Part shown: positions 10,733-40,885 of the stretch, one piece after another
How positions within the stretch are numbered: position 1 is the stretch's first letter
Layout of the letters: each line of letters starts with the position of its first letter
From: Macrostomum lignano
Lineage: Eukaryota
Direction of reading: 5' to 3'
Assembly: GCA_002269645.1 (NCBI GenBank)
Contig: NIVC01001795.1
Location: forward strand, 171,742 to 212,644
DNA: 40,903 nucleotides
Notes under the pieces: model-generated
Databases searched by the model: none
Seen by the model: only the letters and a program-made list of their open reading frames with translations
What the model was told of the DNA's origin: nothing
Made by a program: the position numbers and the translations under genes

Positions 10733-10762
10733 ACGAGTCCTTGTTCCGAATCAAGCCGTCCC

Positions 10763-12214: not shown

Positions 12215-12283
12215 GCGCTAAAATGAGTGCCTGCAGCGCTAAAATGAGTGGCTGCAGCGCTAAAATGACTGCCTGCGGCGCTA
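12215..12283. repeat. Three imperfect tandem copies of a 21-bp unit (GCGCTAAAATGAGTGCCTGCA)
   Basis: Direct reading. Confidence 0.8.
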
Positions 12284-12560
12284 TCTCCGGCCATTAATGA
12301 CGTACACTGCGACGTAAATGTAACTCCACCGATAACCAAGTTGTTTACGCTCTTCATGCGCGTACGTGCTTCGCTTAGCTTATCAAGCCCGCTCCAACTA
12401 CATGTACCGCTCCGTTAATTTCCACGTCTTGACCTGGCATAAAAAATAGAAGCCATGCTCGCGCTGGCATGCCAAACAGATCAAATAAGTAGACTAAGTG
12501 AATTTTGAAAGAAAATTTTGCGATCAACCAGTCTCATTCCGTGGGCCATCAATTAAGCAA

Positions 12561-12698
12561 CCAATGGAGCGATTTTGGAACTGTATGCTACAATTGCCGG
12601 TCTGCATGGGCCCATAAAATCTGATGGATTGGCCTAACTCTCACAGACAGCCAATTTAGGTTCAGAGAATGTGAGGAAGCAGGCAATCAGACTCCAAT
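12561..12698. promoter_or_regulatory. Cluster of four CCAAT/ATTGG boxes; candidate promoter between the divergent WSC and Ssdp genes
   Basis: CCAAT at 12561, 12651 and 12694, ATTGG at 12628. They lie in CpG-retaining sequence ~450-570 bp upstream of the Ssdp ATG. Confidence 0.3.
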
Positions 12699-13134
12699 TC
12701 ATTAGAAGTTGTGGCTCTTTAATTTTTCGGCAAGATAGTATAATTATCGCAAAACAAATAATGACAAGCGTACAGACGTTCTGCCGGCTTTCAAAATTTA
12801 TGACATCCGATTCAAACTAAAAGTGTTGGTACCATAGTTATGAGCATAGGACATAAAAAAGAATTATGTTCTGAATGTTTTATTTTCCATAGGTTGGCAA
12901 TATTGCGGTAATTTTTTAAATAAAATTTTGCTTACATGTATGTTACAAATAAATATTTTTCGTAACTTTTCACGACAAAACTTTTTTCTTTTAGCTTTGC
13001 TGTTCTGATAATTGCTGTATAGTGTGTTTCTAAGGAAGGACATCGTTAAGTTTAGCAAATAAAGCAAAAGAATATTGTCTTAAAAATCAATTTCTGATTT
13101 TATTAAGGAGCCATTTTGCTTTGCTCAATACAGT

Positions 13135-19100: not shown

Positions 19101-22100
19101 ATATCTCCACAGAAGCCCACTGGCTGAACTCATCGGCATGAATTTTAATTTGCTAATGACTTTAAAAGCCTTAATGAAATTGATCTAGATCTCTGATTTG
19201 AACAATAGTAAATTATAATACACTTTCTATTCTTAGTATAATATATAATACACCAGCCTTTTCTATTTCATAATTTTTAAGTGAGAAATTTCAAGTAATT
19301 TTGTTTAAACACCAAAGATATTTTATAAAAAAGCATGTAAGGTCATTTTTAAAAAGGCTTTCTTTGATTGATACTTAAGCTCTGTGTCATCTATATACTA
19401 AACCTGACTTGCCTATTTTTTAAAGATCATAAATGCAGATGCAAGGTATTAAACTTTTTTGCATGATTAGTGAAAATTCAAAAATTTGTTTAACTGAATA
19501 ACATTTTGAGTTTATTTTCAATTTTGATTTCAATTTTAAAGAACCAAAAATTTGGATTTCTATTTCAATACAAAAAATAATTTCAAGCCATCATTTACAA
19601 GTATAACAACGTATAAGGACTTCTTACAAAACTCACTTGCAAAGTCAAATGAGTTTTTAAAGAAAATTTTGTGTAAAATTTTGAAACATTCTATTTTTTC
19701 CTATGTATCTTATTGTACCCTCTGGACTATGGCACCTGCCCCATAGTATAGAAGGTGGCCTTTGTGCTAGAAAATTTTAGCATATCTCTGCCCGTCATTG
19801 ACAATCTTGGCATATATTTGGTATATAGAATTTTTAAGGTCTTACATTAGTATACACAGTTATGTATAAAAAATAGGCAAGTCACGTTTAGTATATAGAT
19901 GACACAGAGCTTAAGTGTCAATCAAAGGAAGCTTTTTTAAAAATGGTAATGCAACTAATAAAACAGAAACAATATTTAACAATATTAAAGCTTGATAAAA
20001 AGATAATTTAAGATAGGGTTTAAGTAAGAATTCAAAGCTAATCAGAAGAAAAAGGCATAGGGAAGAAAATTGAGGATCTAAGAAATGCAAATTTGAATTT
20101 AATTTTAAAGAGGAACAATTTATCTGAAAATACAGAACATTTGTGCTTTGCTTTGATTATTTAAAGTAGTTAAATCAATGACCCCTTGAAATGTTAATGT
20201 AATAAATGGCTGCAACTGCTTGTAGGCTGGCTCTGTACGTGTACGAGTACCTGGTCCACATCGGCGCCTCCAAGGCTGCTCAAACCTTTCTGTCAGAGAT
20301 TCGTTGGGAGAAAAATATCACGCTGGGCGAGCCGCCCGGCTTCCTCTGCTCCTGGTGGTGGTGAGTTCAGCTGTCGCATTCAGTGTCCGCTGCAATTGAT
20401 TATGGGTACCCAGTGCATATTGCCTTTAACTGTATGAACTGCCTTGCAGTGTGTTTTGGGATCTGTACAGCGCCGCGCCTGAGCGTCGGGACACCTGCGA
20501 GCACACCAGCGAGGCCAAGGCCTTTCACGACTATGTGAGTGCGGGTTTGTGCCGACATGAAAATTAAACTCGCATGGGAATCACCTCTGAGTTCACATGG
20601 GAATCAGCTCTAGCTCACATGTGAATCAGCTCTAATCTCACATGAGAATCAGCTCTAGCTCACATGTGAATCAGCTCTAAACTCACATGAGAATCAACTC
20701 TAAACTCACATGAGAATCAGCTCTAATCTCACATGAGAATCAGCATAATCTCACATGAGAGTCAGCTCTAATCTCACATGAGAGTCAGCTCTAATCTCAC
20801 ATGAGAGTCAGCTCTAATCTCACATGAGAATCAGCTCTAAACTCACATGAGAATCAGCTCTAAACTCACATGAGAATCAGCTCTAAACTCACATGAGAAT
20901 CAGCTCTAATCTCACATGAGAATCAGCTCTAAACTCACATGAGAATCAGCTCTAAACTCACATGAGAATCAGCTCTAATCTCACATGAGAATCAGCCTAA
21001 TCTCACATGAGAGTCAGCTCTAATCTCACATGAGAGTCAGCTCTAATCTCACATGAGAGTCAGCTCTAATCTCACATGAGAATCAGCTCTAAACTCATGG
21101 GAATCAGCTCTAAACTCACATGAGAATCAGCTCTAATCTCACATGAGAATCAGCTCTAAACTCATGGGAATCAGCTCTAAACTCACATGAGAATCAGCTC
21201 TAATCTCACATGAGAATCAGCTCTAAACTCACATGAGAATCAGCTCTAAACTCACATGAGAATCAGCTCTAATCTCACATGAGAATCAGCTCTAATCTCA
21301 TGGGAATCAGCTCTAAACTCATGGGAATCAGCTCTAATCTCACATGAGAATCAGCTCTAATCTCATGGGAATCAGCTCTAAACTCACATGAGAATCAGCT
21401 CTAAAAACTCACATGAGAATCAGCTCTAAACTCACATGTGAATCAGCTCTAAACTCACATGAGAATCAGCTCTAAACTCACATGGGAATCAGCTCTAATC
21501 TCACATGAGAATCAACTCTAATCTCCATGGAAATCAGCTCTAAACTCATCTAATTGTTGTCTAAAGAATCACCTGAGGCTTGTATAACTGTCAATACTCT
21601 CACCTGGAATTTGTCTCTAATAAACTCACTTGGTTCGGTCTGAATCAGCAAAAAGCCAGCAGCCACGCCGCCCGCGCACCCTGACCCGCAGGGCTTCGTG
21701 AACACCGGCTTCCCGCCCGGCATGCCGCCGCACCCGAATCCCCAGGCTGGCGGGCCTTCGCCGATGCCGCCGTCCGATTTCTTCCCCGGCGGTCCGCCCG
21801 GTCCCGGCGGCGGCGGCGCTGGCGGGGGCCCGCAGCCCCCGATGGGCCCGGTGGACATCCGCGGCGGCCCGGTGCCCCCCGGCATGCAGCGCGGCGGAGG
21901 CGCCGGCGGCCCACCAGGCGGAGGACCCGGCATGCCGCCTAGACTGCCGCCCCCCAACCCCATGTACCGCGGCGGCCCCCGGCCCGGCTGGAACCCCATG
22001 GGCGGGGCGCCGCCGCCCAGCTCGGGGCCGTACTCTGCGCCCTCGCCCTCGCCCTACAGCGGCGGCCCCCCGCCGGGACCGGGCACGCCTGGCGTGATGC

Positions 22101-22636
22101 CCTCGCCGCAGGACTCCACGGCTAGCGGCGAGTCCATGTACGGGCCGCCGCAGCCGCGCCAGATGAACGTGCCGCCGATGGGGCACCACGGGCCGCCGTA
22201 CATGCACGACGGCTCGCAGATGATGCCGTCCGACATGCCGCCCGGCGGTCACCTGATGAACGGCGGCGGCGGCGGCGGCGGAGGTGGCGCCGGAGGTGGC
22301 GGCGGTGGCCCCGGCGGCGGCCCCGGCGGCGGCCCTGGCGGTGGCGGCGGCCCGTCCAGCAGTCCTCACCCGGGAATGCCGCCGGGCCCGCCGCCGGTCA
22401 GCGAGTACCTGCACTACACGGAGCCGCACATGCACATGCAGCAGTCGCAGGCCATGCAGTCCCACCCTGGCATGGGTGGCCCGCCGCCGCCCTCCGGCCC
22501 GCCCGGGCCGCAGGACCAGAACGACAGCGCCGCCATTCAAAAGATCAAAGAATCGATGCAGGAGGAATCCGAGCGCCTGTTCAAGAAGGAGGGCCATCCG
22601 GGCATAGACACGGAATATGGGTTCGGACAGCAGTGA
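13135..22636 (+). CDS. Ssdp: Single-stranded DNA-binding protein Ssdp/SSBP2-3-4 orthologue (LisH/LUFS domain + Pro/Gly-rich tail), 406 aa. Exons 13135-13190, 20226-20360, 20450-20534, 21692-22636
   Basis: Spliced translation [111 protein letters not shown] is the diagnostic SSDP N-terminus and invertebrate C-terminal motif. All introns are GT-AG with consistent phases (2,2,0). Confidence 0.95.
13495..14500. mobile_element. Cluster of non-autonomous elements sharing CCATAGTC(T/C)AGA(TCAT) inverted termini; class unresolved
   Basis: CCCCATAGTCTAGATCATA (13495) is inverted to CATGATCTGGACTATGGGG (14476-14494) at 17/19. ATGATCTAGA occurs at ~13972. Hairpin TCTAGAC-CATA-GTCTAGA at 14035-14052. 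No TSD found. Confidence 0.4.
14850..16718 (-). mobile_element. Decayed P-element/THAP9-family transposase in Ssdp intron 1 (antisense), with internal deletion, nonsense/frameshift lesions, a 90-bp intron and a MITE insertion
   Basis: Motifs in order: [31 protein letters not shown]|[63 protein letters not shown]|[56 protein letters not shown]. Confidence 0.85.
16034..16300. mobile_element. 267-bp GC-rich MITE with perfect 15-bp TIRs and 8-bp TSD
   Basis: TIR CCCTATTGCAGCCAA (16034-16048) / TTGGCTGCAATAGGG (16286-16300). TSD AAAGACAA at 16026-16033 and 16301-16308. Internal direct repeat CCGCGCCGGACGCC. Confidence 0.92.
16993..17110 (+). repeat. Dispersed repeat (AATTTGTATGCCAAAA subrepeats + CAACTTTGAAAGGG..TAACCTTCT), second copy at ~28605-28775
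   Basis: By-eye alignment of the two copies in the same orientation. Confidence 0.6.
17629..18188. mobile_element. Mutator(MULE)-like MITE, 560 bp, long imperfect TIRs, 9-bp TSD
   Basis: Termini GGCAGTT...AACTGCC. TSD ATTAATCTA at 17620-17628 and 18189-18197. TIR similarity extends ~100-130 bp (e.g. 17727-17763 vs 18095-18131). Confidence 0.85.
19720..19885 (+). repeat. Dispersed repeat, paralogue of ~14035-14175 (CCATAGT-headed element end)
   Basis: CCATAGTATAGAAGGTGGCCTTTGTGCTAGA..AGTATACACAGT..AAAAAATAG aligns by eye with 14041-14175. It is preceded by an imperfect hairpin TCTGGACTATGG/CCATAGTATAGA. Confidence 0.6.
20575..21550. repeat. 23-bp minisatellite (GAGAATCAGCTCTAA(A/T)CTCACAT)n, ~42 copies, filling Ssdp intron 3
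   Basis: Direct reading. It lies between the donor at 20535 and the acceptor at 21691. Confidence 0.97.
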
Positions 22637-23639
22637 CCTGTGATGCCTAGTTTAACCCTTGCTTGTTAACTAAACCCTCTGGCTTAGTTTTAGTTCTTAA
22701 ACTTGTTTTACTAAAGTAGAGTTAATTTGTCAGTTTAAATTGGCGCCATACAAAGCAATAGAACCGGGAAAGTGATTAAAAGCAACCCGGAATGATTTTA
22801 CGAACATTTGGCGCGAATTTGAACCAAATGATTTTTAAAACAAACAATCTCCCAATCCGCTGCGAGTCAGGTGGCGCAGAGTGCGAATATTTGAAAATTC
22901 ACAAGCGTTTTTCTACTTTAGAAATCTAAAAGCAGCTTCTTGTGAATTTATTATTGTCCAATTATTACTGTGCATTCACTGTTCCTATCAATTATTGACG
23001 CGTATACCGAACTTTGCCGTTGTTGCTTTTCTCAATTTTCTTGCTTGTCCCCCTGCTTTTATTCATGTCTTACTGATAGGCCCCAGCAGCCTTCGATTTT
23101 GCGTGTTGTGTTTGCCTGTTCGTTCGGGTATTTGATATGCTGTTATTAACTTATAAATTATTAATACCCCCGTGCCGCCCCCGTGTCTGATCTCTCTGTC
23201 AGTTGAATAATTCCGCCGCTAATTTCATATTCATATCCGAGACTGATCATAAGTTTAAAAAAATTCTGTTTATTTGTGAAAACAAATTCATGATTTGTGT
23301 TATTCGATGTTGTGCATTCTAAGTTTTTATACATTTATCAGGACCTCGCTACGGTATGTTGAAACACCTGCACACTCGACGTACCGGTGTATCGGCATAT
23401 CATTAACTAATGATAGTTCCTTTTTGTGAGCCACCGACTTTCCTGACTGTCAATCTCCTTAAACTCTGTTGGCCTCTATATTGCCAGCTCCTCTGCTTGG
23501 GCTCTTACTCTGGAGAGGCAGAACTGCACTAATAGACAGATCAACCAGCGGGCTTTTGCTTAGCAACTGAATAACTTTGTCATGGATACTGGCCGGCTTC
23601 TCTGAGCGCACTACATATTATTGGATTGGTCCAGCGCCA

Positions 23640-24665
23640 GCCTCCCAGAGTGTCAGTTGCTGGGCCAGCCTTCCAGATTTTTTAGTTGCTGGGCCATCCT
23701 CCCAGATCCTCAGTTGCTGGGCCAGCCTCCAAGATCCTCAGTTGCTGGGCCAGCCCTCAGATTCTCAGTTGCTGGGCCAGCCTCCCAGATCCTCAGTTGC
23801 TGGGCCAGCCTCCAAGATCCTCAGTTGCTGGGCCAGCCTCCAAGATCCTCAGTTGCTGGGCCAGCCTCCAAGATCCTCAGTTGCTGGGTCAGCCCTCAGA
23901 TCCTCAGTTGCTAGGCCAGCCTCCAAGATCCTCAGTTGCTGGGCCAGCCTCCAAGATCCTCAGTTGCTGGGCCAGCCTCCCAGATCCTCAGTTGCTGGGC
24001 CAGCCTCCAAGATCCTCAGTTGCTGGGCCAGCCTCCAAGATCCTCAGTTGCTGGGTCAGCCCTCAGATCCTCAGTTGCTAGGCCAGCCTCCAAGATCCTC
24101 AGTTGCTGGGCCAGCCTCCAAGATCCTCAGTTGCTGGGTCAGCCCTCAGATTCTCAATTGCTGGGCCAGCCTCCCAGATTCTCAGTTGCTGGGTCAGCCC
24201 TCAGATTCTCAGTTGCTGAGCCAGCCTCCCAGATTCTCAGTTGCTGGGCCAGCCCTCAGATCCTCAGTTGCTGGGCCAGCCTCCCAGATCCTCAGTTGCT
24301 GGGCCAGCCTCCCAGATCCTCAGTTGCTGGGCCAGCCTCCAAGATCCCCAGTTGCTGGGCCAGCCTCCCAGATCCTCAGTTGCTGGGCCAGCCTCCCAGA
24401 TCCTCAGTTGCTGGGCCAGCCTCCAAGATCCTCACTTGCTGGGCCAGCCCTCAGATTCTCAGTTGCTGGGCCAGCCTCCAAGATCCCCAGTTGCTGGGCC
24501 AGCCTCCCAGAGTGTCAGTTGCTGGGCCAGCCTCCAAGATCCTCAGTTGCTGGGCCAGCCCTCAGATTCTCAGTTGCTGGGTCAGCTTTCAGATTCTTAG
24601 TTGCTGGGCCAGCCTCCCAGATTCTCAGTTGCTGAGCCAGCTTTCAGATTCTTAGTTGCTGGCTG
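23640..24665. repeat. 27-28-bp minisatellite (CTCAGTTGCTGGGCCAGCCTCC(A/C)AGATC)n, ~37 copies, downstream of Ssdp
   Basis: Direct reading. Each unit carries the interrupted palindrome GCTGG-G-CCAGC. Confidence 0.97.
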
Positions 24666-26319: not shown

Positions 26320-29300
26320 ATGTCTTCTAAGTCGTCTAAAGAGACAAGCATAGATAAAAGCATTGAAACCTCTCAGGAATCAAGAGTTCAAATTAATCAT
26401 GTTTCAGATAGCATGACTCTTCTTTTGTATCTGGGTTTACTGATTGTCACTATCCTTACTGTATGGCTTTTTAAGCATCGACGATTTCGGTTTATTCATG
26501 AAACTGGTCTGGCTATTTTATATGGTAAGAAACTATAAAATTCTTTGTATGTAAATGTGATCACAACCTCTTGTTTTCTCCTAGCCATATTAAAACCATA
26601 GGGGGCATAGTCACAATGTATGGCAGGCTAGCCCTCTGTGTGCCCATTTGTCAAGTAGCTATAAGATATTTTTTGACATAGTTCTAGTTTACTTTGTTAT
26701 ATTCCAAACCGCCTACCCTTGATTCCTTGAATAGAGGGCGAAATAATTTAACGCAGTAAACTAGAACTATACCTATTTTTTTTCTACAGATTGTAGGTCT
26801 ACTGATATATTCTGACAAAGGCCTATGACTCAAGCTAGGCCTATGAGTTGCCATTCTGTAGTTCCTGTTACTTTTTAAATGAAGTATATGGTGGCCATGT
26901 CTATAATATTTGAGCTTATACTGTTATAGGCACGGCTATAATCAATATAAAATGCGTTCTAAGGGCTCTCTCACAATCAAATAGTGGCAGAGGCTTAGTG
27001 TAGTGGATAAGACGATTGCCATGATTTTGTGTTACTCTTAAAAATTAAATTAAATTTCATTTAAAAAAACTCTAACTTTTCAATTGATCAATCTTTTCAT
27101 CCAATCAATGATTATATACATAGCATGGCAGCCATGCCTATAAGCTCTAATATTAGAGACACAGCTACCCACCGTGTCTTTACATGTGAACCCATTTTAA
27201 TAACATGGCCACCCACTGTGTTTTTAAGTGTGAACCCATTTAATATTAGGCCTAATAACATGTCTGCCATGCAAGTTTCATTGACATTGTGGCTATGTCT
27301 TCAATAGTGACTAGGGTGCCATCAAAATGGCCACACGTAGAACGGCCATACAACAAAACGGCCACACTGTCAAAACGGCCACACGACAAAACTGCCACAC
27401 AATATAATAATTTGTAATAATAAGAGATAAGAGAAGTGGAGGGTTGAATGTACATTTAAGTAGAAAGATAAATGATGAACAATCGGGGGGGGGGGTGGCG
27501 TACATGGGGGCCGAGGCACTGGTCAATTAAGAATAAAGGTGGATGGTTGCAGAGAGAGGAGCTTATCATTTTACAACAAGAAAGAAATTAGTTGATTTCT
27601 TTATATTCTTTATATTTAGTTGATTTCTTAGTTGAAAATTTTACTTTGTGAACCATTTTAGCATTTTTTAACTTTCTTACATAACTATTTTAGCATATTT
27701 TAAAAATTTGCATAACTGCTGGTCGCTCCATAAAATACAATTTCATCTTCGCTTTCGGATCCTTTTCGGCCTACATAAATTGCATAATATCTCAATGCAT
27801 TCACTTTTTTGCATTTTGATACTGATGCAAGTACCAAAGCTAAAAACAATTAACATAACAAAGCTTCCTTAACATAACAAATAAAACAAAGTTGATCTGC
27901 AACCCTTTTTGTTTTATATGGCCATTTTGGTGGCCATTCCGCGTGTGGCCATTTTAATGGGCATCCTAGTGACTAGGTCCATACTTATAGACATGGTGCC
28001 ATGTTTATAATATAAATACTTATAGATACTTGTATCTCTAAGTATGGATCTAGTCACTATCAGAGACATGGCTGCTGTGTCTATAGGTTTCTGCATTATA
28101 GACAAGTGCCATGTCTCTAAGTGTGGCTTTTTAAAAATTCCTATGAAGCTGCTTAAACCATGTCCTTATTAATCATCAACTAAACTTTATAAAACTAGTA
28201 GACCCAACCCCTAATGCACTAGATGCCCTATTTTTCTATACTAGACTATGTTAATAACATATACCTATATTCTATCCAAGGTCTAGATCATATAGTAGTG
28301 TATACCAGAACAAGAATCCTAGCTCATCTAAATATATAGCAGTGTACGCCAAAAAGGGTAACAATTCCCCTAATATGTATGCCAAAATTTCTTCTAAAAA
28401 AGGTCATTTAGGTTAAAAAAAGCATAAGACAATAGTTACATCCAAATTAATCAATATTACTCAGTTGTCTTCTTTCAGTCATCTAGAAATAGAAATAAAA
28501 AAAAATTTAAACTCATTTTGAAATAGTTCTTGAATTTTTTTTATGTAAATTGCATAATTTATGTTAAAAGTTTCAGGCACAAGTCACATAGCATAAGTTT
28601 GTAGGCAAAAATTTGTCCACCAAAAATGGTAAGACTTTGTTTGTATGCCAAAATTTGTATGCCAAAAATGGCAAGACTTTGTTTGTATGCCAAAATTTGT
28701 ACCCCAACTTTGAAAGGGGTCATTTGTATGCTGGAATTTTCCGACGTACTTGTAACCTTCTGGAGTCTGGTATTCCATATATTCCAGAAAGTATTTAGCT
28801 ATCTAGTAAAGTGTAGACTAGTAAAGTATACCAATTAAGTGTTCTAATGAATTGTATACTAATAATATTGTATGATTAACAAGCATAAAAACAATGCAAC
28901 AAGCAATAAAGGAAGCAAATAATTTCTGCAAAATAAAACCTGTTCTGTACCATTTAAAAAAAATAGAAATAATTAGTAGGCCTAGAACAAAATAGTAAAG
29001 TTTATTTTTGATTGGAATATACGAGGGGTGATCAAAAAGTTCTGCAACCTTTTGTTATAGCTTTTAGTTATAGAATTGGCAAAAGCCAAAAACTTACACA
29101 TATGCGGCTATATCTGTTTGCTATATTTATATGCATTTTTGGCTTCCAAATGTGCTCTAGTAAAATTTCACAGCCATATATTTTCCATGTGTTTTTAGTA
29201 GCTGATGGAAACATCAAAAGATAGTGTTCGCTTCTATATCTTTATGTGCATGCAACTTGGTTGCAAAGTGACTGAGATTCATACCAATCTGGTGAATGTT

Positions 29301-32300
29301 TTAGCTGACTCTGCTCCATCATTTGACATGGTTGCCCACTGGCTGCGCCATTTCTTGGAAGGCTGGGACAGCTTCAACAATGAACCAAGGTCTGGCAGAC
29401 CCTAGACATCTGTGACCAAAGATGTTGTGGCCCATGCCAATGCAATAATTCGTGAGGATTGGAGCATTATGCTGAGATTCATTGCCTATGAGCTTGGTGT
29501 CAGCTATGGAAGTGCTCATAACATCATGCATGAGTGACTGGGCCACACAAAGACCTACGCTTGGTGGGTACCCCATCTTCTCACTCCGGAGCAGCAAGCA
29601 GAGAGGGTGCACATCTGTCACTTGTGGGTGCAAATGTTTGAGGCCCACGGCCCACGACGACTGTTGGATGTCATCACAGGAGACAAATGTTGGATCTCCT
29701 TCTTTTACCATGAAAGATAAGCAGTCCAACATGGTCTGGCTGGCAGAAGATAAGCCAAGGCCTAAGGTGCTAAAGACTGGATTCCGCAGTCAGAAGTGGA
29801 TATTCACCATTTTTTCAACTCTCAGGGTGTTGTATTAGTGAACATCCTTCCAGCAGGTGCCACAGTGACTGCCAGGTACTACGTAGACACTGCTCTGCCA
29901 GGCGTGCTGCAGGAGTGGCAGGAACGTGCGCAAACCAGGCATGGACCACAACTCCTGCTGCACCATGACAATGCGGCACTGCACAGAGCGGCCTCAACCA
30001 TGGCGTGCCTAGAGCAGCAGGGGGTCCGGCTGCTGCCCCATCCACCCTACTCTCCAGACCTAGCACCATGCGACTTTTGGCTGGTCCTGAGGATCAAATC
30101 CGTCATTTCTGGGAGGCCATTTTCATGCATGCAAGACCTTGCCCAAGTGGTACATTCAGCTCTACAGGGTATACCAACTTCAGAGTACCATGACTGCTTT
30201 CAGACATGGTGCACACGCATGCGACGGTGTATAGATATTGATGGAAAGTACTTTAAGGGAATATGACACTGATTAGATGCCTTGGCTGCTGTAGAACTGA
30301 GTTGTGAGGTCACTTGCAGAACTTTTTGATCACCCCTTGTATTCTTCACTAGGAACTATAAAAATACTATTTTATTTAAAAAGCTAACTTATTATTATAA
30401 TTAAAAAATTACTTTTTTTATAACAAATAATTATTTAATATACTTTAGACAATGATATCATATTCTTCTTATGGTTCTATTTGCTACGCCATAAGCTTGA
30501 ACAAATATAGTTAAGAATTTATTTCTTGGGTAACTGGTTGTTTTGCCCATAAACCATTTTGGCTATGGACATTTTGCCCCTACACCATTTTGCCCACAGA
30601 CTGTTTCTTCCATAGCCCATTTTGGCCATGGACCATTTCTAAACTTTACAGTTTGTTAACTCTGTGCTTTGATTTTAAATTTTGGTGACAAATCTTATTC
30701 TTTTAGTATTTCTGGCTTTACCTTGTAATAATTCACAATCATACATGCGCAACCCCCCTGATTTACACTGGCCATGCGACTTACTTTTTGACCAAAAATG
30801 CAACTTACCTGTGAAAGAAACCCTAACGCAATTTTGAGTAAATGGCAGGAGTAACCATGACTGTCTTATAAGGGCTAAATGCCTCGTCATATAATTAGTG
30901 CTACATCTGTATTCTTTAGACTGGGAATTTTTGCGACTTACCCCTGGTCAACCACAATTTATGGTGGCCAGATCGACTAGCAGTTGCGCATATATGTTCA
31001 CAATCATAATGAACAAAATTGCAATAACACAATTGTTGTAGCAACAATTCAGATCATAGTTTTTTTACACATTAAAAAAATTAGCATTGAAAAAAGAAAA
31101 GAAAGATAAATGTATGGCTATATCTCTAAATTATATAATTACCATTTTGGCCAAAATGCTTATAGCCAAACTGGTTTATGGGCAAAATGGACTTATGGGC
31201 AAAATGGTCTAGGGGTGAAATGTCTATGGCCAAAATAGTTTATGGGGTGAAACAACTGGAATTCTATTTCTTTTATTTATATGCTTGTATCTATATATCT
31301 AGATATATACTAGCTGAAGCATTTATATGCTAGAATTTTCTAGCTTATATTACATCTGCAATATGGCCTATATTGCTAAGAGCCAATCTAAATTAAACAC
31401 TATCTACAATAGTGGTTATTCTAATTGGCTAAAATAAGAGACCTAACTATCTATACTAATATCATTAAAATTGGGAACATATAGGCTCCTATGATAAGCC
31501 CAATGATAAGGCCTATCATTGTTCTCATGTTGGCACTTGGTGCAGTTTTGTTCAGAAAAAAATTATTTATTTTAATTTAATAATTTTAACAACTTAAAAT
31601 TGGTTTTGGTTTATAAATTGAAAACTATAATAATAAATATGACTATAGATTAAAAAATAAGTTTAGTAGATTAATAGTTATAGATTTACTAATTAACTAT
31701 ACTCCAAAAAGATGTTATTCTTACTTAAGAATTTTCTAGTATGTACTTAAAATTATCTAAAGTATATTGGATTAATAGTACTTTCTTTATTGGTATTATC
31801 CAAGTTGCATTATTTTTGAACAATATCTTTTTGGTATTAATGGTATTGGTATTTGGTATATTTGGTGTATTTATTTGAAACTCATTAATTATTCTCATTT
31901 GAAACTTATCAGAGAATTATTTTCTTTTTCTGGAAAGCTTGGTGTGCCTACCCCATATCAGCGACAGAGATGGGGAGTTTCAAGAGCAGCTGCACTGGTG
32001 CTCACTTTTTGCATACATTCTGGCTGCTATACAGCTTCCCCTAGCTCTAAGTTAGGCCCCAAAAACAATATGTTTTTTATGCATCTAAAGTTTAAAGTAA
32101 AATAGGTTGCTATGCTCATTGTTATTTGGAATCTATTTAAACTAAACCCTTAATATGTCATGCCCTAGGAGTTTGTTCTAAATAGTACATGATTGTTTCT
32201 TATAGCTAGGTAAAAATCGAGTTAAAATTGAAACCAGCTCCATAAAAGACATAAAGATATATACAGATATGCCGAGAAATACGAATACATTCCGTTTTTT

Positions 32301-35300
32301 TACATACTCCGTCATTATACATTTCATACAGTCCTAAATTACTTGTACAAGATCTGCTTAATAAGTTCGCGAAAAATGAATATCCTTTTCATGCAAATAT
32401 ACTGAAGTTTGTTTATTTCATTCGATGTTAAAACCTTTCATGTAGATTTTCAGCATCTTTGACTGAGATTCTCCGATGCAGTGGCTGAAAGAGTGATGCA
32501 ACCTCATAATCTTTACTGCACTTGATTGACCATGTGTGACAGAGGAGTCGCAATTCTTGTCCAGTTTCGACTTGGCCAGTTTGCCTCGGAATGCGTGCAG
32601 ACGCTTCAACAAGCCCTGAATGATGAAGCCTCATCCTATACAATGGTATACAAGTTGGTCAGGAGGCGGCAGTGGCTAAGATCGACGAGTGAAAGTATCC
32701 GGGTGCTGGGTAACCATCACCTGAACCCAACCCAGATGCAAGTTCATATTGAGTTCGCAACCTTCATCCATAACAAATTCGACAAGGGGGCTTCGAAATT
32801 GATGGACAACATCCTGACAGGTTATGAAACATGGGTGTACTTCTCAGAGACAAAATTCCAGAGCAGGCAGGGGATCGCCTTCGAAGAGGATGCCCCTGTC
32901 AAATTCCTACGAGTGTCGGCAAGGTCTTGGCAGCATGCGGTGTGGCATTCTGCTACCCATCCTATTCGAGGAAGGTGCCACAGTGACTGGTAACTGGTAC
33001 TCAGGTGTCTGCTCACCGCAGGTGCTGAAGTTACTCTCTCAGGAGCGGCCTTGTCCTTGTCCTTATATGACAATTCGACCTCCTATGAGGCATGCCACTC
33101 ATTGGCTTTGAGTCGGTTCCGCGGTGCAGACTTTCCGGTGTCTTGCTATATTTGTCTTCGAGATGCTCTTGCTGCAGCCCGGGCAAGCAATCTTCGCTCT
33201 TCTCGGTGCGTCGGTTGGTTCAGGCCTGTCCGTCGTGTAGGCGTCTTGGTCCTCTTCTTCTTGTTGGTACCCTGTTTGTAGGTCATTGTACTGCGCACAG
33301 TTGCGTATGTGCCTCGCCATGTTGCTGGCGCTCCTGGGCTGGAGACAGTACGGGCATGTCCCTTTCAGGGCGCCTTTACAGATCTAAAGGTGGTTCGTCT
33401 CGCTGGCCTTGTTGTTTAGGATGTCTCCGCATCTTGGGAACTTCTTCTCCTCTTGTCTCTGTTCTCGATGCATCCTGGTGTTGTGTATCTTCAGTCCCGT
33501 GTGAGTCTTGAACTCTCTGTTGCAGATGGTGCAGTATCTGTTCTCTGTTTGCCGTCCTGTTTGGTCCCTTGGCATGACCGTGTTCTTGTTCATTGCTTTC
33601 ACCTCTTCCCATTTTGTTATGTCAGGAGCGGCCAAAGACTTCTTAGCGGACTTCTTCCTCTTCTCGAAGATATCAAGAAGAATCTCAAAGGAAAGCACTT
33701 TGACTCTCGCAAGGAGCTCGAAGAGGAGCTGAGAGCAGAGCTCAGGTGAAATTGAGGGACTGTTTTACAGCATTGGTTTCATCAGATGAAGAAATGCATC
33801 AATCTGTCTGGAAACTACGTTGAGAAGTCTCATTAGATGGGGGTATATGCGGAAAAAAATTAGTGCCAGAATATTTTAAAAGTGTTTTTTTCGCGAACTT
33901 ATTGAGCACTAATCAGTCATCGTAAATGAGCTCCGAAAATTTGAACATTTTCAGGGTTTACTACGAGCTAAATTGTAGCTCAGATTGAGATATTTGTATG
34001 CTATTAGTCTGTCATCATGAATTTTCGATTGTTATCATAATTAAAGAAGCCTAAGACGAAAGCTGCAATATAAGCTGTACTTGTCGAATTAATATATATT
34101 TAGTCGACTATTTTTAAAGCAATGTAAGGGGCATTGCCAGCTTCACAGCTTGATGCAGTACGCCAGCTTGGCAGCGTCTCCGCCGCAGCTGGCAACCAGG
34201 CAGACAGCGATGAGCGGCGGCTTGATGGCCACGCCGCAGCTGATGAGGTTCTTCAGGATGCACATAGAGCTGGAGATGCCGGCGTTCTTGACGCAGTTCC
34301 AGTCCACAGACAGGAAGGGCACAATCTCGTGGACGAGGTCATCCAGGACCTCCTCACGCTGGGCGGGGGTGTATGCAGCGGAGGCCACGGCCACGAGGCA
34401 CAGAAGAGCAATGACGGCCTTCATTCTGTGAATATTCGTAGTAATTGGAATGCAAAATAGTTATATTGCGCTTACTGTGCTACTATCCACTTATTGAGTA
34501 GAGAGTAGAATATTGATTTGTTTTATTTTTAAAAAGGAAGAATGGAAATTATTGTCGACGAAACTTACTTGTTACTGGAGTTGCGCTCTTCGAATTCGGT
34601 TACTGTCGGCTTATGAGTTTTTGTTAATTGGAGATGGCATCTTAAATCAGACTTGCATATATAGACTATCAAAGAAAAGACTGTCGAGTTCACACGATTG
34701 GGCGTATCGCTGGTGCGAATCTTTTTTGACATTCATTGACAGTTCTTAGCTTGTTAACTCTGACGGCTTGTTGGATTGTCCGCTTTTATCTGCACCAGTT
34801 CCAGTTCCTTACTCGAAGATCTTCTGGTGGATTTTTTATCTGGCGTTTCGGCTAGCCGTATTTTGCTACCGTTAATAATTTGAAAGTAACGAGTTTCAAA
34901 ACTTGTTCCTGCCAGACTTTGGTACTCATAACCAATCTTTACTGCTAAATTGGTCTTATTTGGTCAAAATTTATGTATGTAAAGTGAAAACTCAAACAGG
35001 TGTCTATGCTCGTTGCTATTAAGAATCGATTTTCCTTAAACCCACAATATTTCATGCCGTAGCAGTTGGTTTTTAAGCAGTGGATGTTCACTATAGATAT
35101 GTAAAAAAAGGTTAAATAACTGTTCATTGACTCATGTGTGTACTTGAAGTTGCCAGCCGAGAAAGTTTGGAGATGAATTTCTGGTATTCAAATTCAGAGC
35201 TGGTACTTTTTTGCTGCAAATTTTCTCCACTTGTCCATGCTAGATAAAATTCACTCTGAGCTCGCAGGCCGTGAATTACATGGAAATTTATCATTTCTGT

Positions 35301-38300
35301 TTCTACTAATTCAATTAATGACAGTGGTGGACTGTATACAAACTTAATGGCATAGGATAGTTTATATTAATATTGAGAATCACTAACAATTACTTAACAA
35401 AAAGTCTCAGATAGACTTACAAAGTTAGCATTAAATTAAAAATGAAAAGTGAATTTTGAACCCCATCCAGGTGCATCCAGGTGCCACCTAGCAATTGGCA
35501 CCTGGATGCAAAAATGAACCCGAAAAAAACTCCAAAAACTCCGAAAAAATGAACCCAGCCATCATGGCTAATGATTCAAAACTAAAGTACACTCTGTCCT
35601 ATCTCCAACCCAGGTCTCATAGTTGGCGTTATCATTCGCTACGGCTCTCCCAGCTACCAGCCTAGCATCACAATGATCTCTATCGAGGACTCACCCGAGC
35701 AGTCTAACAAGCTGCCGCCGGAGAAAGTCCTCGTCAACATGTCCGTTCTGAACGAATCGCAAATCTACGAGTACGATTATAAGCGGCGTCTCTATGGCAA
35801 CGATATCAACGCCCCGATTTTAGACGAGAAGGCGACGTTTAATCCCGAAGTGTTTTTCAACTTCATACTGCCACCCATCATCTTCTTTGCCGGCTTCAGC
35901 ATGAAGAGGGTGAGGATGGCGTCCCCAATCTCCATGCATCCCCATCTCCATGGCGTTCCCAATGTCCCTTCATGACGTCCCCAATGTGCCTTCATGATGT
36001 TTCCAATGTGCCTTCATGATGTTTCCAATGTGCCTTCATGACGTCCCCAATGTGCCTTCATGATGTTTCCAATGTGCCTTCATGACGTCCCCAATGTGCC
36101 TTCATGATGTTTCCAATGTGCCCTCATGACGTCCCCAATGTGCCTTCATGATGTTTCCAATGTGCCTTCATGACACGACGCTTGCAGGTCCCTTAAATCC
36201 CATCGCATGACCCCAATCCCACTATGAGGCTTTCAAAACGTCATTGATCAGATTATGCTTACAGCTTTTACAAGCAATAAATTTAAAGCCCACATTATTG
36301 TTCCAGAAACACTTCTTTCGCAATATTGGCTCGATTCTGATGCTGGCATTTCTTGGCACCACCATATCGTGCTTTGTTATCGGGTGAGTTCAGCAACCCA
36401 TGTTTCTTGGATTTCATCTGATCTGTCACTTTTGAACTGCATCTTTGATTTCATAAATTGACTCCAGATTTGCAATACTCCCTCATTCCTGATCCCCATA
36501 TAGACACCATCATCCCTGATACCCATATAGACTCCCTCATCCCTAATCCCAATATGCACTCCCTCATCCCTGATCCCCATATAGACTCCCTCATCCCTGA
36601 TCCCCATATGCACTCCCTCATCCCTGATCCCCATATACACTCCCTCATCCCTGATCCCCATATAGACTCCCTCATCCCTGATCCCCATATGCACTCCCTC
36701 ATCCCTGATCCCCATATAGACACCATCATTCCTGATCCCCACATAGACACCATCATCCCTGATCCCCATATAGACACCATCATTCCTGATCCCCATATAG
36801 ACACCCTCATCCCTGATCCCCATATAGACTCCCTCATCCCTGATCCCCATATAGACTCCCTCATCCCTGATCCCCATATGCACTCCCTCATCCCTGATCC
36901 CCATATACACTCCCTCATCCCTGATCCCCATATAGACACCATCATTCCTGATCCCCATATAGACTCCCTCATCCCTGATCCCCATATGCACTCCCTCATC
37001 CCTGATCCCCATATACACTTCCTCATCCCTGATCCCCATATACACTCCCTCATCCCTGATCCCCATATAGACACCATCATCCCTGATCCCCATATAGACA
37101 CCATCATCCCTGATCCCCATATAGAAACCCTCATTCCTGATCCCTATATAGACACCCTCATCCCTGATCCCCATATAGACTCCCTCATCCCTGATCCCCA
37201 TAGAGCAGGGGTTGGAAAACTTCGACCCTCCTGACTTTTGAAAGTTCACAATAGCAATCCGGCCCGGCCTGCTCAAGGTTTATGTCTCTTCTAAGCTCTC
37301 TTTCTCCCCTCTCCTCTGTCTGCTCTCTTTTCCCTTCTCCCTCCTCTCTTCTCTCCCTCATTTATCTTTTCTCTAATCCCTTCTCTTATCCCATTCCCAT
37401 CTCTCTTCTGCAAACCCCTACCATAGAGTCTGCCTCATCCCAGATCCCAACTGTTCTCCCAAATCGCCGTTGAACTCCCGCAGCGGCGTGACATTCGGCA
37501 TCAGCCGGGCCAGCGCCAGGCTCGCCTCGATCGTCAGCCTCAGCGAGTGCCTCCTGTTCGGCGCCTTCATATCGGCCACCGATCCGGGTGAGAATTTTTA
37601 AAACCGCTTCTTTGCCATCGGCATCTGATGTGCTGTCAAGTCAGGCAAGCCTTTGTTTTCATCGCATCCTTCCAGTCACCGTCCTGGCAATATTCAGCGA
37701 CCTCCGCGTCGAGCCCGATCTCTACGCTCTCGTATTCGGCGAAAGCGTCCTTAACGACGCCGTTGCCATAGTGCTGTCCGAGTCTATCGAGACCTACGGT
37801 TCGGCCGCGGCGGCCGGAGAGACCGCCGCCATCTCCGTGCTGAAGGCCATCGGCAGCTTCGCCGGGGTGTTCCTTGGCGCCATCGGCATCGGCTGCCTGC
37901 TGGGCTGCCTCACCGCCCTCATCACCAAGTTCACGCAGGTGAGTCTCGGGTGAGCGTTTTGGAAAGAGAAGAGTCATCTCTGATCCCACTGTAGGATTTC
38001 GGGAGAATCAGGCTACTGATCCCACTGTGAGGATTTCGGGAGAATAAGGCTACTGATCCCACTGTGGGATTTCTATAAGAGTCATTTCCGATCCCACTGT
38101 GGGATTTCTTTAAGAGTCATCACTGATCCCACTGAGGATTTGGGAGAACAATGCTACTGATTCCACTGTGGGGATTTCGGGAGAATCATGCTACTGATTC
38201 CACTGTGGGGATTTCAAGAGAATCATGCTACTGATCCCACTGTGAGGATTTCGGGAGAATCAGGCTACTAATCCCACTGTGAGGATTTCGGGAGAATCAG

Positions 38301-40885
38301 GCTACTGATCCCACTGTGAGGAATTCGGGAGAATCAGGCTACTGATCCCACTGTAGGAATTTCGGGAGAATCATGCTACTGATCCCACTGTGAGGATTTC
38401 GGGAGAATCCTGCTACTGATCCCACTGTGAGGATTTCGGGAGAATCAGGCTACTGATCCCACTGTGAGGATTTCGGGAGAATCAGGCTACTGATCCCACT
38501 GTGAGGATTTCGGGAGAATCAGGCTACTGATCCCACTGTGAGGAATTCGGAGAATCAGGCTACTGATCCCACTGTAGGAATTTCGGGAGAATCATGCTAC
38601 TGATCCCACTGTGAGGATTTCGGGAGAATCAGGCTACTGATCCCACTGTGAGGATTTCGGGAGAATCATGCTACTGATACCACTGTAGGAATTTCGGGAG
38701 AATCATGCTACTGATCCCACTGTGAGGATTTCGTGAGAATCATGCTACTGATCCCACTGTGAGGATTTCGGGAGAATCAGGCTACTGATCCCACTGTGAG
38801 GATTTCGGGAGAATCAGGCTACTGATCCCACTGTGAGGATTTCGGGAGAATCAGGCTACTGATTCCACTGTGAGGATTTCGGGAGAATCAGGCTACTGAT
38901 CCCACTGTAGGGATTTCGGGAGAATAAGGCTACTGATCCCACTGTGAGGATTTCGGGAGAATCAGGCTACTGATCCCTGTGGGATTTAAAAATGCGGGAT
39001 CCGAAAAGTTGATTATGAGCAGGTTCCAGAGGCCACTATCTGGGTTTCTACTATTTCAAATTCAAAGCCTGGCTCACCCATTGCCCAGGTCCGCGAGCAC
39101 CCGCTGCTGGACACAGCCTGTTCGTGCTGATGAGCTACAGCACCTTCCTGGCGGCCGAGGCGGTGAAGAGCACCGGCATTGTGGCCGTGCTGTTCTGCGG
39201 CATCTGCCAGGCGCACTACACCTATAACAACCTGTCTGACGAGTCCAAGGCCACCACAATGTCATTCTTTGGCCTGTTGAATTTTCTAGCTGAAAATTTC
39301 ACCTTTGTGTACATCGGGGTCAGCGTGTTCACCTACAGCTCGCACCTGTGGGACCCGGTGTTCATTGTGGCGGGATTCCTGGCTATGATCATCGGCAGGG
39401 TGCTGTGCGTCTACCCCCTGTGCGGCCTGGCCAATATTGGCCGCAGGCGCAGCAGCGGCTGCGCCATCGGGCTGTCCCGGATGCACGTGCTGGCCTTCTC
39501 CGGCCTGCGGGGCGCCATGGCGTTCGCCCTGGCCATTCGGAACACCTCATCGGATGCCAGGAAGATCATCTTCTCTACCACTCTCATCCTGGTCATGATC
39601 ACCGTGCTGGTGTGCGGCGGCCTCGCCACCCAGATGCTGCAGTGGATGCACATTGAGTAAGCCTGCGGCCAGGGGGGTCCTTCTGCTTGCAGTCTCGTGT
39701 CCCTCGGTCACTTCCTGCAGGTGGCGTTGGAAAAAACCTTGTACACTTGTACACCTGTACACTTGTTCACTTGTACATCTTTACACTTGTACACCTGTAC
39801 ACTTATACATCTGTACACTCATAAAATCTGTACAATTATACATCTGTACACTTATACATATGTACACTTATACATCTGTACACTTATAACATCTGTACAC
39901 TTATACATCTGTACACTTATACACCTGTACACTTATACATCTGTACACTCATAAAATCTGTACAATTATACATCTGTACACTTATACATATGTACACTTA
40001 TACATCTGTACACTTATAACATCTGTACACTTATACATCTGTACACTTATACATCTGTACACTTATACATCTGTACAATTATAACATCTGTACACTTATA
40101 ACATCTGTACACTTATACATCTGTACACTTATACATCTGTACACTTATACATATGTACAATTATACATCTGTACACTTATACATCTGTACACTTATACAT
40201 CTGTACACTTATACATCTGTACACTTATACATCTGTACACTTATACATCTGTACACTTATACATCTGTACACTTATACATCTGTACACTGGGGTCAAGGA
40301 TCATGGGACTAAAAGATCAGCCATCCAAGAACATCTGCTCTGTGTTCAGAACCTCTCGACCTATTTAAGATCATTGATTTCTGCCGTCTTGAGCACACTT
40401 TGAACACTTTTAGAGGCTCAGAAGACGCCTAAGTTTAACTGTCAGTTAGCTATGGGGTGCAAATCGCCAACTCAACGTGTTCTAGGTTAGGGTGTACACA
40501 GGTACACCCCATTCTGCTTTGTTTTCAAATACGGGCGTACAAATAGAACTGACTGTCAACACCTCCACAAGCTGTCCTGAATTTGAGTGTACATAAGAGC
40601 ATACTGTGTGTACCATGCTCAATGACTGTTAACCATTGCGCGCTCATAATTCATATTCACTTGCATCGCAGAGTTGGAGTTGAAGAGGAACCAAATCGTC
40701 AGCGTCTTGACCGGCAAGACTCCACAGGGGAGGTTCGTAACTGCGATTTCTTTGAGTTTTTTTGTCATGCCAATGTTTAGTCTGTCTCTGCAATTTCATA
40801 TTTTTTATTTTTTACAGGCGCTTCCCAGCCGAGCCTGCGCGACAGGTCTTGCATTGCATTGGGATGGCGGATAGATTGACAAGAA
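26320..40885 (+). CDS. SLC9A6/7/9: Endosomal Na+/H+ exchanger (NHE6/7/9, insect Nhe3 group), 3' end beyond window. Exons 26320-26524, 35614-35909, 36307-36383, 37484-37587, 37676-37938, 39089-39656, 40672-40732, 40818-40885. Apparent 1-nt deletion at ~39117 and a disrupted last exon
   Basis: Spliced translation contains [131 protein letters not shown] and [11 protein letters not shown]. Intron phases 1,0,2,1,0,2,0 are consistent. Confidence 0.93.
27314..27966. mobile_element. Mutator(MULE)-like MITE, 653 bp, 9-bp TSD
   Basis: Termini GGGTGCCATCAAAATGGCCACACG / CGTGTGGCCATTTTAATGGGCATCC. TSD TAGTGACTA at 27305-27313 and 27967-27975. AAAACGGCCA subrepeats. Confidence 0.8.
29022..30339 (+). mobile_element. 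Full-length but inactivated mariner (DD34D) transposon, 1318 bp
   Basis: TA TSDs (29020-21, 30340-41). 26-bp TIRs CGAGGGGTGATCAAAAAGTTCTGCAA, 25/26 match. Transposase 29205-30266 has WVPHLL, ITGDK (from TGDE), HHDNA and [13 protein letters not shown] with 34 aa between the last two Asp. Stops at 29403 and 29535, frameshift at ~29810. Confidence 0.95.
30529..31264. mobile_element. Foldback/MULE-like MITE, ~735 bp, ~100-bp internally repetitive TIRs
   Basis: 30530-30640 is inverted to 31165-31264 (CCATTTTG(C/G)CCATA subunits). Flanking duplication TATTTCTT at 30520-30527 and 31265-31272 (8 bp exact, 9 bp with one mismatch). Confidence 0.7.
32348..33922 (+). mobile_element. Second, internally deleted mariner element interrupted by a LINE fragment
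   Basis: Inverted cores AATAAGTTCGCGAAAAA (32360-32376) / TTTTTCGCGAACTTATT, with TA flanks. Transposase pieces [51 protein letters not shown] and [13 protein letters not shown]. Confidence 0.85.
33051..33621 (-). mobile_element. 5'-truncated non-LTR retrotransposon 3' end (RTE-like) with four zinc fingers, nested in mariner 2
   Basis: 12-bp TSD TCAGGAGCGGCC at 33039-33050 and 33622-33633. One minus frame with a single stop encodes [22 protein letters not shown], (C>F)[39 protein letters not shown] and [20 protein letters not shown], then a short 3'UTR ending GGACAAGGACAA. Confidence 0.75.
34143..34424 (-). CDS. Small secreted six-cysteine precursor protein (93 aa), nested antisense in NHE intron 1
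   Basis: Intact ATG-to-stop ORF with strong GC3 codon bias against an AT-rich background. Signal peptide [16 protein letters not shown], acidic spacer, Cys spacing 10-7-11-4-9. 5'UTR intron GTAAGT(34568)..CACAG(34426) ends 1 nt before the ATG. Confidence 0.85.
   Translation of the reverse strand: MKAVIALLCLVAVASAAYTPAQREEVLDDLVHEIVPFLSVDWNCVKNAGISSSMCILKNLISCGVAIKPPLIAVCLVASCGGDAAKLAYCIKL
34657..34663 (-). promoter_or_regulatory. Candidate TATA box of the nested secreted-protein gene
   Basis: TATATAT lies ~90 bp upstream of the 5'UTR donor. This implies a ~60-nt non-coding first exon starting near 34630. Confidence 0.45.
35472..35510. other. Perfect 15-bp inverted repeat with 9-nt loop, ~100 nt upstream of the NHE exon 2 acceptor
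   Basis: TGCATCCAGGTGCCA-CCTAGCAAT-TGGCACCTGGATGCA. Confidence 0.8.
35955..36172. repeat. 22-bp minisatellite (CCAATGTGCCTTCATGA(CGTCC/TGTTT))n in NHE intron 2
   Basis: About 10 units with two largely alternating variants. Confidence 0.92.
36476..37201. repeat. 27-bp minisatellite (ACTCCCTCATCCCTGATCCCCATATAG)n, ~27 copies, NHE intron 3
   Basis: Direct reading. The unit length is a multiple of 3, hence the long repetitive ORFs. Confidence 0.97.
37975..38985. repeat. 37-bp minisatellite (CTACTGATCCCACTGTGAGGATTTCGGGAGAATCAGG)n, ~27 copies, NHE intron 5
   Basis: Direct reading, between the donor at 37939 and the acceptor at 39088. Confidence 0.97.
39740..40288. repeat. 16-bp minisatellite (TCTGTACACTTATACA)n, ~34 copies, NHE intron 6
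   Basis: Direct reading, between the donor at 39657 and the acceptor at 40671. Confidence 0.97.

Follow-up and report, generated by a model that had tools for sequence, protein, structure and literature searches.

The 40,903-nucleotide stretch analysed here (the window; Macrostomum lignano contig NIVC01001795.1, positions 171,742 to 212,644 of the forward strand) contains on its minus strand an intact protein-coding gene, the window gene, which is very probably a real secreted-protein gene belonging to a family of six-cysteine precursors. The gene (34143-34663) sits antisense, and in its entirety, within the first coding intron (26527-35613, plus strand) of an NHE6/7/9-type Na+/H+ exchanger gene, about 950 nt from the exon 2 acceptor (Table 1). 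The first coding exon of the host matches NHE6 in a phmmer search (PDB 9s0r, E=4.6e-15, human NHE6 residues 53-110) and NHE9 (E=3.6e-11). A protein search with one NHE exon gave nothing but fragments of other animals, all shorter than 312 aa and none above 62% identity, which says nothing about the species. A small gene nested in an intron is a common arrangement and unremarkable in itself. The nesting had been proposed from the letters and open reading frames (ORFs) of the window without database searches (the sequence-only reading), and the flanking exons of the host, 26320-26526 and from 35614 onwards, bear it out.

Several other elements of that reading are found in place: an uninterrupted minus-strand frame of 93 codons at 34143-34424; a TATATAT box upstream on the same strand; and GT and AG at the ends of a 143-nt interval, 34568-34426. 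GC content at the three codon positions of the frame is 0.59/0.43/0.84, in flanks of about 0.38, which agrees with the claimed richness at third positions (GC3). The proposed CpG-retaining island was set aside as weak: the observed/expected CpG ratio is 0.75 in the ORF and about 0.9-1.2 in adjacent 400-nt windows, set against 0.68 across the window. ORF length alone is not above chance: when the surrounding 3 kb is shuffled, 90 of 300 randomised sequences contain an ATG-initiated ORF of at least 93 aa. The window gene is rated real because the homologues above all, and the codon signal, carry the argument, not length. No terminal or inverted repeats were found around it, making it unlike transposon cargo, and tblastn detects no paralogue elsewhere in the window. 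The protein forms a singleton cluster in UniRef; exact matches to it, and to six further ORFs of the window, are absent from the assemblies searched. A scan for bacterial promoters and terminators gave results at chance level, irrelevant to a eukaryote.

Homologues were sought by an exhaustive HMMER search over 1.84 billion representative proteins, followed by a profile search. The HMMER matches to the window protein are P0002 (E=7e-19 over residues 4-93; 46% identity), P0003 (E=2e-10), P0005 (E=7e-9) and P0006 (E=3e-4). With the profile, six more came to light: P0008, P0009 (which stands for 11 clustered sequences), P0010, P0011, P0012 and P0013. A word-indexed protein search with the single window sequence returned only the protein itself. 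The sequence-only reading had called the product an orphan; this is no longer tenable, since these searches recover a family with tandem arrays in M. lignano and distant relatives in a non-animal eukaryote. Judged by these alignments, the window gene belongs to an uncharacterised Macrostomum family of ~95-residue precursors. It is the most diverged of the flatworm members, 43-48% identical to five family subtypes. All named family members are from M. lignano. In P0003, a 979-aa protein named 'C-type lectin domain-containing', the family domain occupies residues 103-182 only, and the entry looks like a merged gene model. A further match, P0004 (406-aa repeat protein, E=2e-9), consists of seven short stretches around 'CIVAEC' and was excluded as a low-complexity false positive.

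At least four subtypes occur in M. lignano, some of them in tandem arrays. In the NCBI assembly, array L007 (15 kb of contig NIVC01000671) holds four full copies and one fragment at L007 positions 1511-13408, and array L008 (10 kb of contig NIVC01004760) holds three copies at L008 positions 1919-10288; the two arrays contain two subtypes, of the P0009 and P0012 types. Between array subtypes, the flanking sequence can be aligned for only about 30 nt upstream of the ATG. The P0002 gene is solitary, lying between DIP2-like and PBD-domain genes, and P0005 adjoins a CEP76 gene; these neighbours mark both as genuine animal loci. P0011 derives from the Logan assemblies SRR31628394 and SRR31628425 and is 68% identical to P0009. 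The coding regions of all copies are single exons. The NCBI Mlig_3_7 gene models were built from RNA-seq data and assembled transcriptomes (PMC5730564), so the paralogues with such models are transcribed.

Some of these models depart from the underlying DNA. The NCBI model of P0005 (L002, 10001-10384) omits eight residues, NDIIHEVV, that are encoded in frame, the 24-nt stretch apparently having been annotated as an intron, and the models of P0002, P0008 and P0009 begin upstream of the true signal-peptide methionine. On the Logan contig that carries P0011 (L004), the end at about 1115-1179 resembles the 3' part of a tRNA (…GGTTCGAATCCC); a tRNA gene, or a short interspersed element derived from a tRNA, may lie beside P0011.

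All family members follow a common plan: a signal peptide; an anionic segment 24-27 residues long, whose net charge ranges from -3 to -6; a P-x-[IL]-x-[VIL]-[DN] motif; and a cysteine domain of 50-52 residues, with net charge +1 to +6 and a grand average of hydropathicity (GRAVY) of 0.6-1.1. In the window protein, cleavage of the signal peptide is predicted before AYT, a start of the mature part that the alignments show to be kept in the flatworm paralogues. Invariant in the nine aligned sequences are, in window numbering, P36, C44, C55, C63, C75, C80, G81 and C90. The cysteine spacing of the window protein is C-x10-C-x7-C-x11-C-x4-C-x9-C-x3, and its C terminus conforms to the family pattern C-[IF]-[KH]-x. 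The third loop has 11 residues in the window gene and in the protist relatives described below, versus 13 in the other flatworm members. The anionic segment and the P-x-I-S-V-D motif are kept as strongly as the cysteine domain, which suggests that both belong to the folded protein.

AlphaFold models built with the nine-sequence alignment reach moderate confidence, with a predicted local distance difference test score (pLDDT) of 65 and a predicted template modelling score (pTM) of 0.43 for the full precursor, and pLDDT 74.5 and pTM 0.52 for the mature part. In the latter, five helices span mature residues 4-18, 26-31, 37-47, 53-64 and 68-74. We infer that the product is secreted and oxidatively folded, forming a small helical bundle with three disulfides. 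The signal peptide, acidic segment and hydrophobic, helical six-cysteine domain of the sequence-only reading are supported by the sequence, its charge partition and the model.

The transcription of the window gene can be modelled by comparison with its paralogues. In six copies, a TATA-like box lies 95-102 nt from the ATG, with a leader that contains no intron. In the window gene, the TATA-to-ATG distance is 240 nt, and 97 nt after removal of the 143-nt GT-AG interval. The match of the spliced distance to that of the paralogues lends the exon-intron model indirect support. The donor is AA|GTAAGT, with its GT at 34568-34567, and the acceptor cacAG has its AG at 34427-34426, one base before the ATG; donors in the host NHE gene are likewise GTAAG or GTGAG. 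Transcription would start ~30 nt past the TATA box at 34663-34657, and removal of the 5' untranslated region (5'UTR) intron would leave a leader of ~66 nt, as in the paralogues. A TATA promoter belonging to the window gene itself is plausible on these signals. Alternatively, the AG at 34427-34426 could be a spliced-leader acceptor instead of an intron acceptor, which is conceivable because 38.8% of M. lignano genes are trans-spliced (PMC5730564).

The paralogues also have a longer promoter module, in which a GC box is followed by GCGTCA[C/G]CTGCAG, with an E-box inside it, and then by CATAAAT or CATATAAAAT at -95 to -102. It is found upstream of L001 (9916-9968), of L002 and L007a-c (in each at about -130 to -95 from the ATG) and of L004 (417-452), and is common to subtypes only about 45% identical in protein as well as to L004, which comes from a second source. 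The presence of this module in such diverged copies suggests co-regulation in one cell type. Of the module, the window gene keeps the TATA distance only, provided that the 143-nt intron is spliced out. At the 3' end, paralogues have AATAAA or ATTAAA 24-41 nt past the stop codon; a pattern scan downstream of the window gene found no canonical AATAAA, and AATATA is the sole poly(A)-like signal.

Beyond Macrostomum, the family includes three environmental sequences, P0006 and P0010 (JGI sample 3300030741) and P0013 (3300030743), which are 27-34% identical to the window protein. Each has eight cysteines, the extra two forming C-x3-C at each end of the domain. Against a profile built only from mature flatworm sequences, the three score 26-31 bits, and the best of 6,000 shuffles 14.6 bits. 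In the reverse direction, a profile of the three protist sequences gives its best flatworm score to the window gene (36 bits, E=5e-4 for a library of 1.84e9). Because these scores involve neither signal peptides nor circularity, the relationship between the flatworm and protist sequences stands. The extra CX3C pair suggests that the first and last helices are antiparallel and cross-linked.

The contig context indicates what kind of organism these sequences come from. On contig L006, P0013 (42-326, plus strand) is convergent with a ribosomal protein L6e gene (610-1200, minus strand) that scores 192 bits to plant, 175 bits to Tetrahymena and about 120-128 bits to animal L6. The L6e frame has an in-frame TAA at the conserved glutamine of VVFLKQL.SGLLLVTGP, and both L6e and P0013 end in TGA; together, these features point to a ciliate-type genetic code. 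As far as these contigs can tell, the probable source of the environmental relatives is a ciliate-like protist that reads TAA as Gln. P0010 ends at TAA with no TGA nearby, which is awkward for a strict ciliate code. On contig L003 (949 nt), P0010 (157-450, minus strand) and P0006 (482-775, plus strand) stand head to head, 31 nt apart; P0010 has no ATG and its 5' end overlaps the P0006 leader, and the contig is probably an assembly chimera of two transcripts. A scan of metagenome DNA with the protist subfamily confirmed nothing.

The spread of the family is patchy: among 5.8 billion proteins, its members come solely from Macrostomum and a single kind of non-animal eukaryote. The window gene and the protist sequences share the 11-residue third loop and a W before the first cysteine. 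In one scenario, the family would have been exchanged horizontally between a ciliate-like protist and the Macrostomum lineage and would have a helical disulfide-rich fold unrepresented in the PDB; the window gene would then be the least-changed flatworm copy, and the tandem arrays later, fast-diversifying derivatives. The patchy spread, the single-exon coding regions and the lack of a structural neighbour are what suggest this combined scenario, which is judged unlikely. Two other accounts compete with transfer: the family may be old, and too short and fast-evolving for detection elsewhere; or ciliate genes may be poorly called by standard-code gene finders.

Rates of change were estimated pairwise by the method of Nei and Gojobori. 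The ratio of non-synonymous to synonymous change (dN/dS) is 0.3-0.4 between near-identical array copies and about 1.0-1.4 when the P0009 and P0012 subtypes within a single array are compared, a contrast that rests on ~5.5 synonymous and 27.5 non-synonymous differences, with codon bias deflating dS. Between L007b and L007d, the proportions of non-synonymous and synonymous differences (pN and pS) are 0.211 and 0.145 in the cysteine domain, where the cysteines are all kept, and 0.033 and 0.110 in the signal peptide and first helix. The window gene is too distant from the others for this method (dS about 0.65-0.8). These estimates are suggestive of diversifying change in the cysteine domain between array subtypes.

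Tandem amplification, codon bias and fast change outside the cysteines fit an abundant effector in an arms race. The best explanation overall, at a probability of about one in two, is that the window gene encodes a secreted extracellular effector of this family, probably one that acts on membranes or lipids. If so, the mechanism would involve: packing of the anionic helix on the cationic hydrophobic domain, masking it, or removal of that helix as a propiece; and extracellular action of the exposed cysteine domain on membranes or lipids, most likely as antimicrobial host defence. The specific assignment of a membrane-active defence function is tentative. A taxonomically restricted effector, which the sequence-only reading had suggested in the form of a lineage-specific one, is a reasonable class for the product.

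The hallmarks of such an effector (small size, secretion, taxonomic restriction, diversification of paralogues and raised dN/dS) are equally those of reproductive proteins. The product could accordingly be a seminal-fluid or prostate protein, or a pheromone-like ligand for a receptor of the mating partner. The layout of signal, pro and mature parts, with six cysteines in helices, recalls ciliate pheromone precursors. An in situ screen in M. lignano is reported to have found many transcripts limited to the prostate that encode putative seminal fluid proteins (PMC5977470). Those proteins come from the same organism and are likewise small, secreted and poorly conserved; no link to the family was found, and the paralogue identifiers are absent from the searched supplements of that screen and of a three-species reproductive RNA-seq study. 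For a soluble ligand, moreover, the hydrophobicity of the cysteine domain is unusual; none of the structures returned by Foldseek is a pheromone; and relatives exist in a protist, to which flatworm mating biology cannot apply. A reproductive or signalling role is considered rather unlikely on this balance.

Near-identical tandem copies and strong codon bias also suggest bulk production, as would fit a protein with a structural or packaging role in secreted material such as rhabdites, mucus, adhesive or eggshell, which would assemble via hydrophobic and disulfide contacts and attack no target. High hydrophobicity and the division into acidic and basic halves could drive self-assembly. Such proteins are usually larger and repetitive, however, and here there is a single 77-residue domain; moreover, fast non-synonymous change is unusual for a matrix protein. 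This makes a structural component improbable.

Beyond the small number of differences behind the rate contrast, several points weigh against a defence effector encoded by an active window gene. The whole mature protein (77 residues) has a net charge of -1 and its sequence contains no dibasic cleavage site after the acidic helix, so a cationic peptide is not assured; the segment that the sequence-only reading called pro-like may or may not be a propiece. Both AlphaFold models are of only moderate confidence and lack a structural neighbour. No expression site and no proteomic or functional datum was found for the family: the paralogue identifiers are absent from the supplements of M. lignano papers that were searched, and a full-text literature search for them returned no paper. 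The transcript model of the window copy is drawn from DNA signals. A gene with exactly this product is not on record among the assemblies searched, though the NCBI M. lignano paralogues are. Finally, GCGTCA[C/G]CTGCAG is absent upstream of the window gene, with up to 3 mismatches allowed, in 34425-35100 on the minus strand.

The last two of these points are what would be expected of a silent or decaying copy, with an ORF left intact by recency or chance and with coincidental TATA and splice signals; a frame length that is not rare and the missing canonical poly(A) signal would fit as well. Such a copy would hardly look as the window gene does. Its protein has diverged by 52-56% from its nearest relatives, yet the frame, the signal peptide, the motif, the six cysteines and a GC3 of 0.84 are kept, which would not be expected under drift in the absence of selection. 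By the profile score given above, no other flatworm member is as close to the protist relatives, and the protein is present in UniRef. A silent or decaying window copy is accordingly improbable.

To our knowledge, almost nothing is known of secreted effectors and immunity in M. lignano, a transgenic flatworm model that is tractable by RNA interference. The analysis defines a compact, testable family with a clear architecture, tandem arrays and signs of diversifying change, to which the window gene is an entry point. Should its fold prove new, or its protist connection turn out to be gene transfer, the family would be of interest to structural and evolutionary biology; as yet another lineage-restricted gland protein, it would be ordinary.

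The remainder of the window contains repeats and other reading frames. Eight minisatellite arrays, with periods of 14-37 nt and 10-117 copies, make up a large share of it; four lie in NHE introns, and the arrays generate long spurious ORFs on both strands. The NHE intron also holds a mariner/Tc1-type transposase that has decayed and is spread over several frames (HTH_48 at 29202-29402 and DDE_3 at 29796-30266, plus strand). At 27314-27955, a repeat shares 91% identity with part of an M. lignano contig. The zinc-finger ORF downstream of the window gene, which lies in a GC-richer patch and overlaps several further ORFs, may be left over from a retroelement. The 312-aa low-complexity ORF may be an exon of a gene for a Q/P-rich nuclear protein.

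Table 1. Positions of the window gene, its host gene and other features in the window
Feature	Position	Strand	Evidence or remark
Window gene coding sequence, 93 codons + TGA stop, single exon	34143-34424	-	ORF listing, sequence, GC3, homologues (HMMER, profile search)
Predicted signal peptide, residues 1-16	34377-34424	-	n-h-c layout, A-x-A at -3/-1, by reading the sequence
Anionic N-terminal segment, residues 17-43, then P-x-[IL]-x-[VIL]-[DN]	34296-34376	-	Charge -5; predicted amphipathic helix
Six-cysteine domain, residues 44-93	34146-34295	-	Net charge +4, GRAVY 1.12, four predicted helices
Putative 5'UTR intron, 143 nt, GTAAGT...cacAG	34426-34568	-	Sequence signals
Putative non-coding first exon	34569-34633	-	Start placed ~30 nt downstream of TATA
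TATA-like box TATATAT	34657-34663	-	Sequence
Weak poly(A)-signal-like hexamer AATATA, 43 nt past stop	34095-34100	-	Pattern scan
Host first coding exon, NHE6/7/9-type Na+/H+ exchanger	26320-26526	+	ATG start, GTAAGA donor
Host first coding intron, 9,087 nt	26527-35613	+	Donor and acceptor seen; acceptor AG 35612-35613 (...aacccAG)
Host exon 2	35614-35909	+	Pfam Na_H_Exchanger profile positions 40-65
Further host exons	36307-36384, about 37500-37587, 37588-37940, 39124-39657	+	Pfam Na_H_Exchanger in profile order
104-aa ORF, single C2H2 zinc finger, ~450 nt downstream of window gene	33384-33698	-	
532-aa uninterrupted ORF, almost all ankyrin repeats	3564-5162	+	Pfam Ank_2 E=4e-137
416-aa ORF	5893-7143	+	Weak sub-threshold Pfam: Mab-21 C-terminal domain, CRM1_C
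ORF with signal-peptide-like start and WSC (carbohydrate-binding) domain	11154-11591	-	Pfam E=4e-13
312-aa Pro/Gly/Met-rich low-complexity ORF, 60% GC region	21698-22636	+	No Pfam match
Minisatellite arrays	1105-2738, 10089-10730, 20565-21548, 23636-24662, 35949-36174, 36477-37202, 37980-38977, 39748-40289		

The family has no detectable relation to any characterised family, in line with the sequence-only reading, which recognised none. Pfam gives nothing credible in any of the nine members. NCBIfam gives nothing meaningful and hence no link to bacteriocins or to ribosomally synthesized and post-translationally modified peptides. Sequence searches of the PDB are empty both with the single window protein and with the family profile. 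Foldseek against the PDB reaches E=4.2 at best with the pLDDT-65 model and 5.3 with the pLDDT-74.5 model, at template modelling (TM) scores of no more than 0.37. Of the three folds singled out beforehand as candidates (saposin-like, Histoplasma CBP and ciliate pheromone), neither CBP nor a pheromone appears in the Foldseek results against the whole PDB with either model; the saposin-like fold is taken up next.

Saposin-like proteins (SAPLIPs) are among the closest known systems. Like the family, they are secreted, all-helical domains of ~80 residues with six cysteines, three presumed disulfides and a hydrophobic face or interior suited to lipids. A highly diverged SAPLIP would explain the ~77-residue all-helical six-cysteine secreted domain, the UniRef name of P0012 ('Saposin B-type domain-containing protein', presumably given by an automatic rule) and the one saposin-fold row from Foldseek (2b8i, E=8.7, TM 0.32-0.37), which appears with the pLDDT-65 model only and not with the better pLDDT-74.5 model. 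The sequence comparisons argue the other way. As a control, one saposin C sequence was enough to recover more than 25 SAPLIP entries from the PDB, among them saposins A, B and D, surfactant protein B, acyloxyacyl hydrolase and NK-lysin, so saposins are readily identified from sequence. The profile of the family, by contrast, recovers no SAPLIP there, none of the nine members matches SapB_1 or SapB_2 at E<=10, and an hhalign comparison with saposins C and D puts the probability at 0.1%. The spacing differs as well: SAPLIP cysteines follow C-x2-C...C-x(about 10)-C...C-x5-C, with the first pair at the N terminus of helix 1, and those of the family 10-7-11/13-4-9 after 27 cysteine-free residues. 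The first helix of the family contains no cysteine, whereas saposins staple their N and C termini. By these sequence comparisons, the family is not a recognisable SAPLIP, though its topology may be that of the saposin fold, with nested 1-6, 2-5 and 3-4 disulfides. The loose resemblance to saposins and CBP is not supported, and a SAPLIP diverged beyond recognition is highly improbable.

Euplotes pheromones are made from signal-pro-mature precursors that yield small helical bundles with three or more disulfides. Some relatives of the family apparently come from a ciliate-like organism. Euplotes pheromones (Er/En) are, however, three-helix bundles of 38-50 residues with other cysteine spacings, in contrast to the 77 residues and five predicted helices of the window product; the genetic code of Euplotes differs from that inferred for contig L006; and none of the pheromone structures, which the PDB contains, is among the Foldseek rows for either model.

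In plant alpha-hairpinins and CHCH-type hairpins, paired CX3C motifs cross-link two antiparallel helices one turn apart. The protist relatives similarly carry C-x3-C at both domain ends. Unlike these hairpins, the flatworm members keep one cysteine of each CX3C pair and have four between them, and no sequence similarity would be expected.

The precursors of cationic antimicrobial peptides, of the defensin prepropeptide type, consist of a signal peptide, an acidic segment and a cationic, cysteine-stabilised part, and form tandem, fast-evolving families. Defensins are beta-sheet proteins; the family domain is helical and very hydrophobic, with no recognisable processing site after the acidic helix. 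The order of the parts is nevertheless the same, and the charges of the acidic and basic parts roughly cancel in both (-5/+4 in the window gene). What the window gene represents is a new family within a familiar category, that of small secreted cysteine-rich proteins.

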